Source: Magallana gigas (taxonomy: Eukaryota). From it: DNA of 64,000 nucleotides. The stretch's first letter is position 1; every line of letters begins with the position of its first letter. Shown in pieces: positions 38,073 to 49,325 of this stretch. Both the position numbers and the translations under genes were made by a program. The DNA lies in the NCBI RefSeq assembly GCF_963853765.1, contig NC_088853.1:44206001-44270000 (forward strand), read 5' to 3'. The notes under the pieces are model-generated. The model made no database searches. It had not been told where the DNA came from and saw only the letters and a program-made list of their open reading frames with translations.

Positions 38073-41000
38073 CTCCTCCGATGTCAAACCTACCGCTGAC
38101 CCAGTCTTTGATGTCATAGAAACTGTCTTCTGAAGTGATGTCATAAACCAGCATGGCTGCATTGGCCTTTCTGTAGTACATGGGTGCCTAAAATGGAAAA
38201 AAAAAAAAAAGAAGAGCTTATTAATACAGATAAAAAAAAGCTTGTAAAACAGTTACTGAAGAATGAAATTAAATCAAACAACCTTATAAATTTATTAGCG
38301 ATCCATTAATTGTGAGTTAATAACTTAATATGTCTTTCCCATAATTGGATTTCTAAATGGGACTCCTCTCTTTTTTTCTGGCAGAAGGGGGGGGGGGGGG
38401 ATGGTGTTAATATTTTGGCCAAAATTTCTTGAACTGCAAAGGTAAGTAGTACCTACCGGTATGTTCTTTTTACATCATTCCTATTTATAAGCAATTGGCA
38501 ATATGCTGTTAACTTACCATTGACCTGAACCTTTCTTGACCTGCAGTATCCCACACTTGCAGCTTCATTCTGTAGTTATTTAGGGTTCTGAAAATAATAC
38601 ATTTTTAAAGTCAAAGTTTCAAGGATAGGTTAAAGTCAAAAACTTGCCAATAGAAAAAAGTATAGTCACTTACATGTTCCAACACATGAAAGAACTTGTA
38701 ATTACATGTTTGTAACATGTTGGAGCAATTCAAGGTAAATTTTGTTTTATATATTCAGCTGTTCAAAATGTAATCATTTGAGAGCAAATTTTTAAATAGA
38801 TTTATATACATGTTTTCAAAGAGAATTTTTTAAAAAAATGTCAAAAATCTTTTATAGGCTACTTTTTGTTTCAGTAATAAGTCTTCAACAATGTTAAAAC
38901 TCTTATTTATCAAAAAATGTACATCATACAAAACAGCGCAGTATTTTAAATTTCAGAAATATTTCCTTTAATATATGTGAGTATGAAAGAAGAAGGTAAA
39001 GTTTCTTTCAATATTTGCCCTAAAATTCAAATGTTGTTTAAATCTCATGAAAATATACATACAGTAAAACACGGTTATAGCGAACACGCTTATAATGAAT
39101 TGACGCTTACAGCGAAGTGAATTTCATTCCCCAAGTCTCTATTTCATGTTGTAAACCTGACGGTTATAACGAATTACGCCTATAACGAAGTTAAATTGCC
39201 CATCCCTGGGACTTGGTTATTTATAAGCGTGTATTACTGTATATCATCTTGAATGTGTGTGTATAAAATGCCAAGTTATATGGAACAGAACACTTTTTAT
39301 ATTGTTTCAAAATATAATTATGAGTTATGACTTCAATATATTGACATATTTTTAAGATTTAGTCAAAAATGTTGAAAAATGGCACATTTTCTTAACGTTT
39401 TTAAAGAGGAAAATGTGTCTGCAGACATCGCCAACAACAAAATTAACATATTTTATGTGATATCACATGATAAACTTAAATGTGAGTATATTGGAGGTGA
39501 CAGCTGCAGACATATTTTTTTTACTTTAAGAAAAAACAAAACACTGAGGAATTGGTGTCTTCTGCTCACTTTTATGAAAATTGTGGAAAAATTGCACTGT
39601 AACAAGGGTGATTGTGAAAGTCTAATCAGGTATAACTCTTTATAGATTCTTGTTTATGGGTATTTTTGTATTAAAAATGTTACATTCAATTTCTTGTGAG
39701 ATTTTAAATAATCGCTCTAAAACTTTTTAATGAAATTATGACTGAAAGTGAAACGTACGTACTGTACCTAATTCTTCATGCAATGTTGTATATGTACCTT
39801 TCAACTGATCTGTTATGCATTTACCAGTTATTGTAGTTGTGTTAGTGCCAATAAAATATTTGGATTAATTGATATGAAACAAAATAACTTGACTAGAATG
39901 TACTTTTAGAAGCTGCAATACTCACAGTTTGTATGTAAAAAATGAGGCACCAATAGTTGGACTGACTGCCTTACTGAACATTCCACCAACATAGCGAATA
40001 ACAACACTGGTTTTTCCAACCGCTGTAATAACAGAATTAAATTTTAATCTTTTTACATACTGGTAATATACATGCATGAGTAAAAAAAAACCCATAAATC
40101 ATGCATGAGCACAGGAGTCGGCGATTTTATCAATTTGTTGTAAATAAATGAGAAACAGGCAAAAACCCTACCAGTGAGCTTCGCGAGCGTAGCGAGCGAA
40201 GCGACAGGATGGCAACGAGTTTTCCAGATTTTCTCTATTTCGCTATCACACCCAAATTAAACACCACATATCAACTCCATAGGGTTATTTCATCAATCCC
40301 TGGCATTTTTTTCCCAACATTTACTCTTCGTAGTCATTTAAATCCAAGTTATGCAAATCTCGATCTTAAACAGCGGCCATTGACAATTCTGCGTGACGTC
40401 ACATTCACTGCAGAACTAAATACTCGGAACACTGTCAAAGGAAGGGATAAAGATCGAGGTACTCCGAAAGACATCAGAAAGCATGAAGGAAAAGTTTGAT
40501 CTACGGGAAAAAGCTTTCAACAAAGCATTAGAGGGCCACAGTTTGATACTTACGGGTCAGTGTGGAACTGGGAAAACCTACTTATTAAGGTAATGCATAC
40601 AACTGATATACATAAACAACTACCTCTTAACGACACTGTATTTTTAATGTCGAAAATTTCCCGCAAAAAGTCAAGCATAGCCTGGGTCGTATATATACGC
40701 ACAATTTTTGTATATACTATATATATTGACAGGTTTTGTGCCTATATTTACTTTGGTTTGGAAAATGTTATTTTTTAAGACTAAGGTATCAAACAAAAAC
40801 TGTTTGCATCGACAAAAACCTTATAAAGAGACCTGATAATTTATATCAAAACATTAATTGACACAATGTCTACTTCTTTTGCATGCCCAGAAAAATATTT
40901 TCCAGGGGTGTCCGAGGGATATTTTTGTTTGCCGGAGGGGTTCAATGCCTTTTTTTTTTTTTAATAATTTAATAATTTTTACTATGTAAATTTTTTATGA

Positions 41001-47000: not shown

Positions 47001-49325
47001 CATTTGAAACACATGTGAAATTTTTATATCATAAAGTGTGTGACATTATGAGGAAATCCCCAAAATCCCCACAGGATTGGACTGATGCATTCATTACCAT
47101 GAACACATTTCTTCTCAGTGATGTACATATTTCTTCTGTGAAGCAATTGTTTCAGAAAGAGGCACTTTCCAAAGAAGAAAACAAGTTGAGTACTAAGATT
47201 GTTCTATGGCTTATGGATAAAGAGATTGAAAAACAAGCACAAAATCTGGTTCAAAAACATATTGAAAATGCTAACAAGTCTGAAGTTTCTTCAACATTAT
47301 CTGCAGCAGCAGAAGCAAAATTGAGATATCTAGCTGGAGCCTGCATTCAAAAAATTACAAAACGAATTAAAGAGTCAGTTTTAAGAAAAATAGGAAAAAC
47401 TTCAAAGAAAAGTAGAATCCTCAGGAAAATGGAATACAGGAAGCAAGCAATGTTAAAAAGCTTCAGGATAAAAGAAGAAGATGTCGAAGAAGGTCAGCAG
47501 AGCATGCAGGAGATTGAATACAAACAAGGGCCAACCAGGGGCTTGACAATTGTCAGCGAGTCTGTGTTCTCATTTTTTAAAACGCTGCATAACACTGTAC
47601 AGAAGAAGTTGACAACTGACCATTTTCATTTATTTCCTGACTTGCATAATGTGATCCGAAGAAATGTTGATTCTGACATGACTCTGGCAGATGAGTGGAT
47701 TGCATTATTTAGCAATGTGGAGGTTACAGACGAAGAATTAGACAATGAAATTTTTTTAACATTAATTATGGAACTCTATCGAGACATTACAGAGCATTTC
47801 ATCAGGATTTCTTATGTTGATGCTTTAAAGAATTTTAAAAGATCTGTTCCTCGGAAGAAGAAACAAGCATTGAGATCAAAAGTTCAAGCCTTAGGTGAGA
47901 GGGAAGACCCGAAAAAAAAGAAAGTAGATGAGAAAGAAGAAGATTCCTTTTCGTGTAGTATATGCAAATGTAACTGTGAATGGGAGCCAGCTAATATAGG
48001 GGATCAGAGCATTGCATGTGACAAGTGCAACATATGGTTTCACTATAAATGTGTAAATTTAAAAGGGAATGAAGCCTTTCTAAAAAAGACAAATACAACA
48101 TGGTACTGTTCAGGTTGTAGCAGAAAAGGAAAGGGGCGAGGGAAGCGTTCTTCCAAGAAATAGGTACAGCATTGAAAATACAAAATAAAAATGGTTATAT
48201 TTGTTGTTTCTTTACTGGCAATGAATGGTCAAAAATCAACCCATCAGACCTTACTTAATACTAAATCATTTGTTAAGCTATGATTTTATTCAGTGTTCAG
48301 TTTGAAAATTAATTTTCTTATTTTATCACATTGTACACCCATATTTTATTTGTGAAATATGCAACAGGCATGTGCGGATCAAGGAGGGGGGTCAGGGGGA
48401 TACCCCTCCCCCCCCTCCTGCAAAATTCAAATTATATTAAGAATATTAAACAATTACCTAAATATGCATTATCCCCCCCCCCCCAAAAAAAACACCTTGG
48501 AAAATTTTTCTGCACATTTGCACAGGAGTTGACAATTTTATAAATTTGTTGTAAATTAATATATGCTCACTACACTTGCAAAGATCACTGGTAGTTTTTA
48601 TTTGATTTCTCGTTAATAAAATTTATTCACAACAAATTAATAGAATTGTTGACTCCTGTGGTTATGGTATTGTAAACATTTTGTCATGCATTTTCACCAT
48701 TGAAACTTTGTGTCATTGTGCACTTAATAAAATCTACTTACCACACAGCTGCATCAAAGTTGTTGGACATTTCAAATGTCTTCAATCGGCAGTCAAAAAC
48801 GAACGTCAAAATCTGTTTTCAAATTTCCCGCAAACGAAACTATCGGATTATCGCCCTTTATTTTCAAAGTTATGGTATTTAACATATCTTAAGGAGATAG
48901 AGAAGGGAGATGATATTTGGATTTTTTAACATTATAAAATAAATCAAACACAATAATAAATATAATTTTTTTTTATTAGCATTAGTTAAGATTAGATAAA
49001 TGTATATTTTCTGCAGTGAATGTGACGTCACGCAGAATTGTCAATGGCCGCTGTTTAAGATCGAGATTTGCATAACTTGGATTTAAATGACTACGAAGAG
49101 TAAATGTTGGGAAAAAAATGCCAGGGATTGATGAAATAACCCTATGGAGTTGATATGTGGTGTTTAATTTGGGTGTGATAGCGAAATAGAGAAAATCTGG
49201 AAAACTCGTTGCCATCCTGTCGCTTCGCTCGCTACGCTCGCGAAGCTCACTGGTAGGGTTTTTGCCTGTTTCTCATTTATTTACAACAAATTGATAAAAT
49301 CGCCGACTCCTGTGGCATGAGAAAC

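Follow-up and report, generated by a model that had tools for sequence, protein, structure and literature searches.

A stretch of 64,000 nucleotides from the oyster Magallana gigas (contig NC_088853.1, positions 44,206,001 to 44,270,000; here called the window) contains genes for a transposase and for a helicase of the PIF1 family between one pair of terminal inverted repeats (TIRs). This raises the question whether the helicase is a proper part of the transposon and, if so, what a cut-and-paste element would do with such an enzyme. The reading favoured here, with a rough probability of 0.6 for its parts taken jointly, is that the element at positions 40110-49314 (approximately 9.2 kb) represents an autonomous DNA transposon of full length which was inserted recently, that its two genes were carried throughout the diversification of a P-superfamily lineage in molluscs, and that the helicase, by analogy, would serve processive repair of the donor gap. 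Accessory helicases are already known in Kolobok and Academ transposons. The pairing of a P-type transposase with a PIF1 helicase, of which a preliminary description of the locus knew no account, was not found in the full-text literature that was searched either.

The ends of the element are well defined (Table 1). Both 306-bp TIRs and the 7-bp target site duplication (TSD) reported previously were found, the repeats being fully complementary. The left terminus reads 5'-CACAGGAGTC and is kept in all related elements; the 36-nt terminal sequence has two sites in the window, at the two TIR ends, with none expected by chance. A TGACGTCA palindrome is present in the left TIR at 40394-40401, with an identical offset in Saccostrea; it was not found in more distant elements and was rejected as a conserved promoter element of the TIR, since it is kept in the two oysters only. 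Internal inverted repeats around either gene, which were sought inside the element as a test for nested insertions, were not present. The 140-bp mini-element, which is situated inside transposase intron 1, has no TSD. Two unrelated repeats (44035-44195 and about 44476-44756) are nested in the central non-coding region and lengthen it; they were seen as hairpins and have further copies elsewhere in the window. The region has no similarity to its 348-nt counterpart in Saccostrea.

Table 1. Positions in the window of the ends, exons and other features of the M. gigas element.
Feature	Position	Strand	Remarks
Left TSD, GCATGAG	40103..40109		identical 7-mer at 49315-49321; eighth base differs
Left TIR, 306 nt	40110..40415	+	100% complementary to 49009-49314
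Helicase exon 1	40483..40589	+	ATG to Walker A (GQCGTGKTYLL); donor AG/GTAATG, phase 2
Transposase exon 3	41126..42200	-	second RNase H half, putative helical insertion domain, DIVENLF; stop 41128-41126
Transposase exon 2	42412..43845	-	N-terminal beta-rich domain, HTH, first RNase H half with DEMTIQ
Central non-coding region	43846..44800		common to helicase intron 1 and transposase intron 1
Helicase exon 2	44801..45116	+	motifs Ia, II
Helicase exon 3	45297..45425	+	motif III, GDFKQLPP
Helicase exon 4	45635..45863	+	gene-model exon
Helicase exon 5	46287..48163	+	2B domain, motifs V and VI, helical domain, PHD; stop 48161-48163
140-bp mini-element	48521..48660		both ends resemble TIR terminus (CACAGGAGTTGAC...)
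Transposase exon 1	48742..48770	-	ATG, MSNNFDAAV plus TG, donor GTAAGT
Right TIR, 306 nt	49009..49314	-	inverted-repeat pairing with left TIR
Right TSD, GCATGAG	49315..49321		matches left 7-mer exactly, 7 bp

A second copy, 99.75% identical, was detected on another chromosome of M. gigas with the TSD GTTGCAT. Since the TIRs of the window element are 100% identical and this near-identical copy is located at another TSD, the element appears to have been active recently. The second copy lacks 3.5 kb of its interior; at the junction of this deletion 6 of 7 nt match (4 of them contiguous), a microhomology which is short and imperfect, and such a deletion is the kind of product that aborted gap repair yields.

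The transposase had been considered complete, which is correct insofar as a protein of 845 amino acids without internal stop can be assembled; the two long open reading frames by themselves have no ATG at the conserved N-terminus, and the protein is complete only with a distant first coding exon of 29 nt beside the right TIR (48770-48742, joined to 43845). This exon and the G at 43845 complete a Trp codon. Exon 2 opens at a conserved AG/G acceptor, without an ATG at its start, and its first full codon is Leu, always following AG (window, L001, L002, L003 and the Sinanodonta locus L006). Counterparts of exon 1 are MSNNFGASVW in Saccostrea and MSTNIDIAAW in Tegillarca, and phase-matched candidates are present in Haliotis, Sinanodonta and Argopecten; conservation of the DNA inward from the right TIR ends at 48724, just beyond the exon 1 donor. 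Splicing of exon 1 to exon 2 is suggested by this comparison between species. Two Logan contigs (L009, L010), from which precisely intron 2 is removed, confirm the junction of exons 2 and 3; in these contigs exon 2 is preceded not by exon 1 but by about 250 nt which resemble intron sequence, and the exon 1 junction was not confirmed in them. None of 19 full-length transposase relatives, mostly prokaryote-style gene calls, has a spliced start of the type "MSxN...W". An upstream exon or a THAP domain within 43845-44800 was considered and rejected, since nothing there is conserved with Saccostrea and the exon adjoins the right TIR.

The motifs DEMTIQ, DGASTNR and DIVENLF (the third catalytic motif) are intact in the window transposase, and exon 3 has amino acid identities of 88% to Saccostrea and 62% to Tegillarca. 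The Pfam family TNP-like_RNaseH_N (PF21787) was matched by the window ORF with E = 3.7e-7 and by full-length relatives with E = 1e-18 (positions 2-136 of 137); PF21788 was recorded for the relative P0086, with a faint match in the Haliotis product. PDB sequence searches with the transposase ORFs and with a profile of 8 sequences did not yield a P transposase, which was found only via the predicted structure and Foldseek. The predicted fold was matched best by 6pe2 and 6p5a, both structures of the Drosophila P transposase (E = 1.7e-21, target TM 0.79-0.81); the following folds had E ~1e-5 and TM ~0.3, and ISCth4, RAG1 and Hermes ranked far behind. The predicted model of P0065 yielded an alignment of about 510 columns with the P transposase structure, and in it an all-helical stretch (approximately 595-750) lies between the second and third catalytic motifs. 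A THAP domain is the hallmark of canonical P transposases. Searches of the N-terminal 295-300 residues of the window protein, P0065 and P0076 gave no match to it with a cutoff as loose as E <= 10; in the model, a confidently predicted beta-rich domain of no known family takes its place. By predicted fold, the transposase is thus P-type, without THAP.

The PIF1-family helicase of 885 amino acids is complete, as had been stated: five exons, with all introns GT/AG, yield 2655 nt (885 codons) without internal stop, and Pfam matches were obtained to PIF1 (PF05970), Pif1_2B (PF21530) and a C-terminal PHD finger. The protein shows the helicase motifs I, Ia, II, III, V and VI. Exon 1 is situated beside the left TIR, with identical donor position and phase, also in L001, L002, L005 and L006, and forms part of the NCBI model P0002 of Saccostrea. 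Exon 5, which is 100% identical to M. gigas XP_065923960.1, encodes a helical domain of about 330 amino acids, for which no significant Pfam or PDB match was found, and the PHD finger (approximately 47954-48118). A bromodomain in the C-terminal half was rejected, since the matches to BRD9 (E = 0.14-0.9) were below significance.

The enzyme is a PIF1-family SF1B helicase in a clade of its own; it is closer to cellular Pif1 than to that of Helitrons, the latter being represented in the comparison by Helraiser alone. Scores were 200 bits against human PIF1 (residues 19-419) and 70 bits against Helraiser; the fold alignments had identities of 33-34% to Candida and human Pif1 and of 21% to Helraiser. 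With Foldseek, the Candida, human and yeast enzymes were matched at E = 1e-34 to 1e-30 (PDB 8xak and 7oar among the fold matches). In the tree, the helicases of the elements were monophyletic (99% support), apart from the cellular PIF1 of bivalves. An HUH Rep domain, reported as not visible in the preliminary description, was absent from the window ORFs, from P0002 and from the best 120 relatives of the helicase core.

Both genes are located inside the TIRs, as had been described; what had escaped notice is that they are interleaved on opposite strands rather than placed side by side. Helicase exon 1, with the Walker A motif, adjoins the left TIR and is separated from the other helicase exons by the entire transposase body, which is spliced out; transposase exon 1 (MSNNFDAAVW) adjoins the right TIR and would be spliced over helicase exons 2-5. 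Since each first exon is spliced across the partner gene, the primary transcripts should run antisense through each other, over about 7 kb according to the gene models. The DNA blocks conserved between the window and Saccostrea stop at the outer exon edges or not more than about 20 nt from them, and the intron positions are conserved. In the RefSeq models of M. gigas both distal exons are missing; both proteins are shortened, and the helicase is named "PIF6-like". Mutually intronic genes with first exons beside the TIRs represent an unusual kind of gene packing, which is missed by standard pipelines.

The proposal of a two-gene cut-and-paste element of the P superfamily, as opposed to a single capture event, gains support from other molluscs. 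Eight further loci were found to have the transposase-helicase pair between TIRs; they come from seven species (six bivalves and one abalone; genera Saccostrea, Tegillarca, Sinanodonta, Haliotis, Argopecten and Mytilus) and one ENA sample. With the window element, the pair is retained in nine loci of bivalves and a gastropod, among which identity falls to about 40%. Five complete TIR-bounded copies, including that in the window, have differing TSDs of 7-8 bp (GCATGAG, TACGGAC, CCTCACC, ATATAAAC and CGTTGGAT). The length of the TSD is 7 bp in the window element, L005, L006 and L011 and 8 bp in L002 and L004; L001 has none. TIR lengths in the lineage range from 277 to 628 nt, all with the end 5'-CACAGG, and element sizes from 9 to 17 kb. 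Values of dN/dS, calculated against Saccostrea, were 0.10 (transposase) and 0.11 (helicase), indicating purifying selection on both, and the pairwise divergences of the two genes are correlated (r = 0.95, Mantel p = 4e-4). The 90% clusters comprise 36-37 member sequences from many assemblies. Two Mytilus loci (L007, L008) have a simple convergent, non-overlapping layout with the same helicase; a locus of Mytilus edulis (L003) is treated as degenerate, since it has neither of the distal exons and its right end is not clear. As a side observation, some "bacterial" MAG proteins are contamination from mollusc transposons.

How the helicase could contribute is suggested by its cellular relatives, since cellular Pif1 acts in break-induced replication. 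Pif1 is best documented in replication and repair synthesis, and a role of PIF1 in gap repair following P-element excision was described (bioRxiv 10.1101/554550); the donor breaks of P elements are repaired by homologous recombination or end joining (PMC7776569). In the favoured reading, the transposase would excise and reinsert the element by cut-and-paste, with a staggered target cut of 7-8 bp, and the helicase would act after excision, by promoting processive D-loop synthesis across the donor gap of 9-17 kb with the sister chromatid or the homologue as template. A full-length copy, instead of a truncated one, would be restored at the donor site, with a net gain of one copy; the PHD finger and the helical domain could tether the helicase to chromatin. 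The left TIR may hold the helicase promoter, judging from its position, and on the same positional grounds promoters would be expected in or beside both of the identical TIRs. Under this arrangement, an element would have to possess both ends for co-expression of the two genes.

A more far-reaching version is doubtful, namely that the element is self-checking and self-repairing, with identical TIR promoters driving mutually intronic genes and its own PIF1-PHD helicase being recruited to the excision gap, where it would render repair synthesis processive enough for recopying of the whole 9-kb element. If true, only copies which are intact from end to end would make either protein; a cut-and-paste transposase would become effectively replicative, and the rise of parasitic deletion derivatives would be limited. 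At least for this clade, PIF1-like genes of molluscs would then belong to P-type transposons and not to Helitrons.

Some transposases have dedicated ATPase partners, and the helicase could likewise work within the transposition reaction, by unwinding or remodelling the TIRs for synapsis or cleavage, by stripping the transposase from the strand-transfer complex, or by targeting via PHD-histone contacts; the situation would then resemble that of Mu, Tn7 and IS21 with their dedicated ATPases. Helicase and transposase always occur together and co-diverge, the TIRs are long throughout the lineage, and the PHD finger suggests contact with chromatin. We consider this reading unlikely, however, since to our knowledge no helicase is needed by those P, Galileo and 1360 elements which have long TIRs. 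An interaction between helicase and transposase would be conjectural, and the best-documented functions of Pif1, named above, point to replication and repair synthesis.

Rather improbable is a role of the helicase in protecting the element from R-loops, G-quadruplexes or transcription-replication conflicts that its convergent, overlapping transcription would cause, or in PHD-guided anti-silencing against the host. The antisense overlap of the primary transcripts would fit such a role, as would the ability of Pif1 helicases to unwind G-quadruplexes and to displace proteins (bioRxiv 10.1101/554550; the fold matches include 8xak and 7oar) and the PHD finger with a weak bromodomain-like signal in the C-terminal half, which is not significant (E = 0.14). 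However, the convergent Mytilus elements L007 and L008 carry the same helicase without overlapping genes; because of these, the helicase appears not to be tied to interleaving, provided that their transposases have no distant first exon.

The notion that the helicase is a passenger, i.e., a captured host PIF1, a Helitron fragment or the result of nesting of unrelated elements, is very improbable and has already been largely refuted. Transposons do capture host genes, and PIF1-like ORFs of invertebrates are usually ascribed to Helitrons; against this stand the recurrence of the pair in nine loci at identities as low as about 40%, the low dN/dS of the helicase and the co-divergence of both genes, the lack of internal TIRs around either gene, the interleaved exons with conserved intron positions, and a helicase family which is separate from host PIF1, lacks Rep and resembles cellular Pif1 more than Helraiser. 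Least credible is a domesticated, immobile host locus of transposon origin, since purifying selection on both genes and their annotation as ordinary RefSeq genes are outweighed by perfect TIRs with an intact TSD, by the second M. gigas copy on another chromosome, by insertion sites and TSDs which differ in every species, and by the many assemblies represented in the 90% clusters.

Recruitment of a helicase by DDE cut-and-paste transposons has precedents in Kolobok (RecQ) and Academ (SF2), to which the element would add a third, independent case. The family recruited here is chiefly known from break-induced replication and from long-tract repair of the gaps which P excision leaves. Whether a transposon manipulates repair at its donor site for gain of copies is directly testable with this young element, which is available as one intact copy in M. 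gigas, for which genomic resources and aquaculture lines exist. Caution is indicated in surveys, and PIF1-like ORFs of molluscs should not be counted as Helitrons or as genome-stability genes of the host.

Comparison with the Drosophila P element, human THAP9 and Galileo/1360 shows a predicted RNase H core, with a putative helical insertion, which matches the P transposase structure. The TNP-like_RNaseH_N match, a TSD of 7-8 bp, termini beginning with CA and the occurrence of internally deleted derivatives are further traits of the P superfamily, and long TIRs with a 7-bp TSD recall Galileo/1360, a likeness of shared traits and not of a tree. In contrast to the P element, the oyster element has a second gene, for a PIF1-PHD helicase, and its transposase has a beta-rich N-terminal domain instead of THAP; the mollusc elements are larger (9-17 kb, compared with 2.9 kb for the P element), and the genes of the oyster element are interleaved, with first exons beside the TIRs.

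AcademH is a DDE transposon with an SF2 accessory helicase; together with KolobokH and Kolobok-1_CCri (RecQ), it resembles the oyster element as a cut-and-paste DDE element which stably encodes an accessory helicase. The resemblance is one of organisation only: here the transposase is P-type and the helicase is PIF1 of SF1B, in contrast to RecQ or SF2, and the available portions of the KolobokH and AcademH descriptions do not mention a PHD fusion or interleaving. The helicase of Kolobok-1_CCri is also encoded on the complementary strand (PMC9587614).

The Helitron and Helentron RepHel proteins likewise represent PIF1-family helicases in mobile elements. In Helitrons the helicase is fused to an HUH Rep endonuclease, and TIRs and TSDs are lacking, whereas the oyster element has TIRs, a TSD and a DDE transposase, and no Rep. 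With cellular PIF1 (human PIF1, yeast Pif1 and Rrm3, bivalve enzymes) the element helicase shares a full-length helicase domain, the 2B domain and the motifs I-VI. It differs from them in lacking the cellular N-terminal domain (PF25344, seen in P0117, P0157 and P0185), in its C-terminal extension of about 450 amino acids which ends in the PHD finger, in forming a clade separate from bivalve PIF1, and in being encoded within a transposon.

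The two TIR arms were found by an inverted-repeat search to be 306 nt long and 100% complementary, and the sequence GCATGAG stands outside either end; since the eighth base differs, the TSD is exactly 7 bp. Repeats and duplications of these lengths had been claimed in a preliminary description and were borne out, as was the presence of a P-type transposase and a PIF1 helicase inside the TIRs: Pfam searches recovered TNP-like_RNaseH_N and a weak P-element HTH in minus-strand ORFs, and PIF1, Pif1_2B and PHD in plus-strand ORFs. The 36-nt terminal sequence had no further match in the 64-kb window beyond both ends (0 expected by chance). 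A perfect (GA)26 microsatellite starts 7 bases past the right TSD.

Positions of features in the window and in related loci (window coordinates unless a locus is named)
Feature	Position	Strand	Remarks
TIR arms	40110-40415, 49009-49314		
Helicase exon 1	40483-40589	+	alignment of P0002
Helicase exon 2	44801-45116	+	alignment of P0002
Helicase exon 3	45297-45425	+	alignment of P0002
Helicase exon 4	45635-45863	+	alignment of P0002
Helicase exon 5	46287-48163	+	alignment of P0002
Transposase exon 1 (predicted)	48770-48742	-	29 nt, ATG-MSNNFDAAV-TG, GTAAGT donor
Transposase exon 2	43845-42412	-	
Transposase exon 3	42200-41126	-	
Transposase ORFs	42408-43844, 41126-42193	-	
Conserved blocks	40110-40594, 41093-43848, 44774-45428, 45632-45866, 46278-48179, 48724-49313		BLASTN vs Saccostrea element
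Palindromic MITE-like repeat	44035-44195; also ~889-1003, 6504-6679, 32283-32384		67-nt arms, 91% complementary
Second dispersed repeat	44476-44756; also 61373-61603, 52629-52690		in central intron
Mini-element	48521-48660		140 bp
Microsatellite	49328-49379		
B-box zinc finger ORFs	54974-56620, 59309-60928		intronless; 548 and 539 aa
Runs of N	7723-7868, 19414-19578		distant from element
L001, Saccostrea cucullata	palindrome, L001 18454-18571		TIR 277 nt; TSD none seen; interleaved
L002, Tegillarca granosa			TIR ~350 nt; TSD 8 bp; interleaved
L003, Mytilus edulis A	tandem array, L003 12238-13233		left terminus only; TSD not found; degenerate
L004, Argopecten irradians			TIR 628 nt; TSD 8 bp; transposase nested in later helicase intron
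L005, Haliotis rufescens (abalone)	duplications, L005 19495-22440		TIR 337 nt; TSD 7 bp; interleaved
L006, Sinanodonta woodiana			TIR 352 nt; TSD 7 bp; interleaved
L007, Mytilus edulis B			TIR 294 nt; simple convergent
L008, ENA assembly			TIR ~115 nt (90% identical); simple convergent
Second ENA contig			same gene order
L011, M. gigas OY970753.1 (~17.03 Mb)	L011 7466-13186		internally deleted sister copy; 99.75% identical; own 7-bp TSD GTTGCAT

The helicase exons were derived from an alignment of the window with P0002, an NCBI protein of Saccostrea cucullata. The Walker A box does not lie immediately upstream of 44800; it sits in exon 1, just inside the left TIR and left of the entire transposase gene. 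The five exons have GT/AG introns with matching phases and give 885 codons with no internal stop, as expected for the complete 885-aa helicase proposed earlier. The transposase body opens at 43845 with a Leu codon, not ATG, and this codon follows an AG acceptor in every case (window, L001, L002, L003 and L006). Two dangling bases of the predicted exon 1 form a Trp codon with the G at 43845. The transposase, also thought to be complete, has 845 codons and no internal stop when this distant exon is included across the predicted junction, and the motifs DEMTIQ, DGASTNR and DIVENLF are intact. As modelled from sequence, the transposase starts beyond the helicase gene, near the right TIR, so that either gene has its start beside a TIR and an intron that spans the body of the other gene; with such gene models, the two primary transcripts must overlap antisense over ~7 kb.

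Both distal exons are left out of the M. gigas RefSeq models. Saccostrea (MSNNFGASVW) and the ark clam Tegillarca (MSTNIDIAAW) retain the exon 1 peptide of the transposase together with its donor, at a distance of 240-270 nt inward from the right TIR, and phase-matched candidates ending in TG|GT were found in Haliotis, Sinanodonta and Argopecten. Saccostrea, Tegillarca, Haliotis and Sinanodonta also share helicase exon 1, with its donor at the same place (after ...GKTYLL + 2 nt). Six conserved blocks between the window and the Saccostrea element end at, or at most ~20 nt from, the outer exon edges, one of them spanning the 180-nt helicase intron 2, and the long non-coding stretches between blocks are unalignable. 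The first 60 residues of transposase exon 2 must be translated, since they are conserved and confidently folded in the model. In two Logan contigs of a ~90% identical relative (L009 and L010, from SRR26458974 and SRR26458967) transposase intron 2 is absent to the base, which confirms the exon 2/3 junction; ahead of the exon 2 acceptor the contigs still have ~250 nt that resemble intron, and they may derive from transcripts spliced in part or from a genomic variant without this intron. The splice from exon 1 to exon 2 is predicted from comparison. Twin promoters in the TIRs are suggested by where the two first exons lie, each beside one of two identical repeats; if this is true, protein output would depend on an intact element.

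The central intron contains a palindromic MITE-like repeat, unrelated to the TIRs of the element, and a second dispersed repeat; because of these two insertions the central region measures 956 nt here versus 348 nt in the Saccostrea element. A mini-element with no TSD, whose ends resemble the TIR terminus (CACAGGAGTTGAC...), sits in the gap that separates the helicase stop from transposase exon 1; at the equivalent place the Saccostrea element carries another palindrome, of 118 bp and with CACAGG at its ends. These could be either MITEs that inserted by chance or an internal pseudo-end with a function. Outside the element, two ORFs with B-box zinc fingers probably belong to an expanded family of TRIM-like host genes.

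An AlphaFold model of the full-length transposase relative P0065 (50-sequence alignment, mean pLDDT 84) matched the strand-transfer complex of the Drosophila P-element transposase (6pe2, 6p5a) with E = 1.7e-21 and a target-normalised TM of 0.79-0.81 over ~510 columns; the next folds were ISCth4, RAG1 and Hermes (E ~1e-5, TM ~0.3). Sequence-only PDB searches did not find the P transposase. The transposase family is large, comprising 5844 cluster representatives at E ≤ 1e-3. A search of the transposase for a THAP domain found none; in the predicted model a beta-rich domain with conserved cysteines stands in its place.

Comparisons of the helicase were carried out with P0002, which exon for exon shares 74-86% identity with the window protein. 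Its score against human PIF1 was 200 bits, in an alignment covering the whole helicase domain, versus 70 bits against the Helitron Helraiser. The nearest structures to its model (pLDDT 82) were Candida, human and yeast Pif1 (28-34% identity), with Helraiser ranking 38th (21% identity). The best 120 helicase-core relatives were family members first, then bacterial and cellular PIF1, and a Helitron Rep domain was absent from all of them. In a maximum-likelihood tree the 22 transposon-type helicases formed one clade with 99% support, apart from bivalve cellular PIF1 orthologues. No significant match was obtained for a ~330-residue helical domain between helicase and PHD finger; a BRD9 bromodomain signal in it (E = 0.14) is a lead only.

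Related loci were obtained via homologues of the helicase and of the transposase. Whether other copies keep the helicase, a check proposed in the preliminary description, could be answered: the same pair lies between TIRs in related loci with differing TSDs, and CACAGG begins every terminus read (window, L001, L002, L004, L005, L006 and L011). A comparison of window and Saccostrea gave dN/dS values of 0.10 (transposase exon 2) and 0.11 (helicase exon 5); in transposase exon 3, dS was saturated and dN was 0.08. Pairwise identities of both genes correlate among nine elements (r = 0.95, Mantel p = 4e-4). The kept pair, low dN/dS and co-divergence indicate that the helicase was inherited with the transposase through the whole radiation, and a one-time capture in the window copy, or repeated capture, is thereby ruled out.

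Three layouts occur in the lineage: simple convergent (L007, L008), transposase in a late helicase intron (L004), and fully interleaved (window, L001, L002, L005, L006). The Haliotis element measures 17.4 kb; downstream of its complete helicase, exons 2-5 of that gene are partially duplicated in tandem. Mytilus edulis A has a 61-bp tandem array near its right side with an inverted match to a 36-nt site near the left end; judged by sequence, these may be subterminal transposase-binding repeats. Proteins assigned to Sedimenticola and Thiodiazotropha MAGs (P0005, P0010, P0024, P0043 and P0069) share 35-62% identity with the helicase or transposase of the mollusc element, most likely due to host-DNA contamination of symbiont bins.

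Within M. gigas, the window helicase matches XP_065923960.1 ("ATP-dependent DNA helicase PIF6-like") at 100% identity over 830 residues, and the transposase is 99.7% identical to XP_065927627.1, encoded at L011 on another chromosome. The L011 deletion spans window positions 45766-49243 and takes out helicase exon 5, transposase exon 1 and most of one TIR; its junction shows short imperfect microhomology (6/7 nt matching, 4 contiguous). RefSeq gives here a 652-aa "uncharacterized protein" beginning at an internal Met. The element appears to have been mobile recently: its TIRs are perfect, its TSD is intact, and a near-identical deletion derivative lies at another site.

The results establish a P-type cut-and-paste structure with 7-8-bp staggered target joining, a conserved intact PIF1 helicase gene with a chromatin-reader finger, and recent mobility. 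The transposase would bind the CACAGG termini and subterminal TIR, then excise and reinsert the element. Synthesis across long gaps often aborts, which leads to internally deleted copies, and D-loop migration in break-induced replication is driven by cellular Pif1. P elements gain copies because the sister chromatid or homologue serves as template for filling the donor-site double-strand gap (PMC7776569), and Drosophila Pif1 contributes to long-range synthesis in a P-element gap-repair assay (bioRxiv 10.1101/554550). With a PIF1 of its own, an element of 9-17 kb would raise the odds of full recopying after excision. The helicase may perhaps aid such gap-repair recopying, to which we assign a probability of about 0.35; the L011 deletion is of the kind expected from aborted gap repair. 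A direct action of the helicase in the transposition reaction appears unlikely. Resolution of conflicts or silencing arising from the overlapping transcription is quite improbable, and it is weakened by L007 and L008, which carry the same helicase in a layout scored as non-overlapping, provided that their transposases have no distant exon 1.

Full-text literature searches yielded neither a P-type element that carries a PIF1 or PHD helicase nor an interleaved layout; Repbase and Dfam were outside the scope, so earlier cataloguing is possible. Two mollusc genome papers merely list PIF1-like domains among transposon-related or hemizygous genes. The element is not a Helitron: as noted beforehand, it contains no HUH Rep; it is bounded by TIRs and a TSD, and its helicase, which forms a clade of its own, lies closer to cellular Pif1. 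By catalytic-core fold, TSD and termini it belongs to the P superfamily, from which it departs in lacking a THAP domain and in breaking with the one-gene norm. Accessory helicases in DDE transposons are already described, AcademH being one other such transposon. KolobokH and Kolobok-1_CCri carry RecQ, which in Kolobok-1_CCri is on the complementary strand (PMC9587614).
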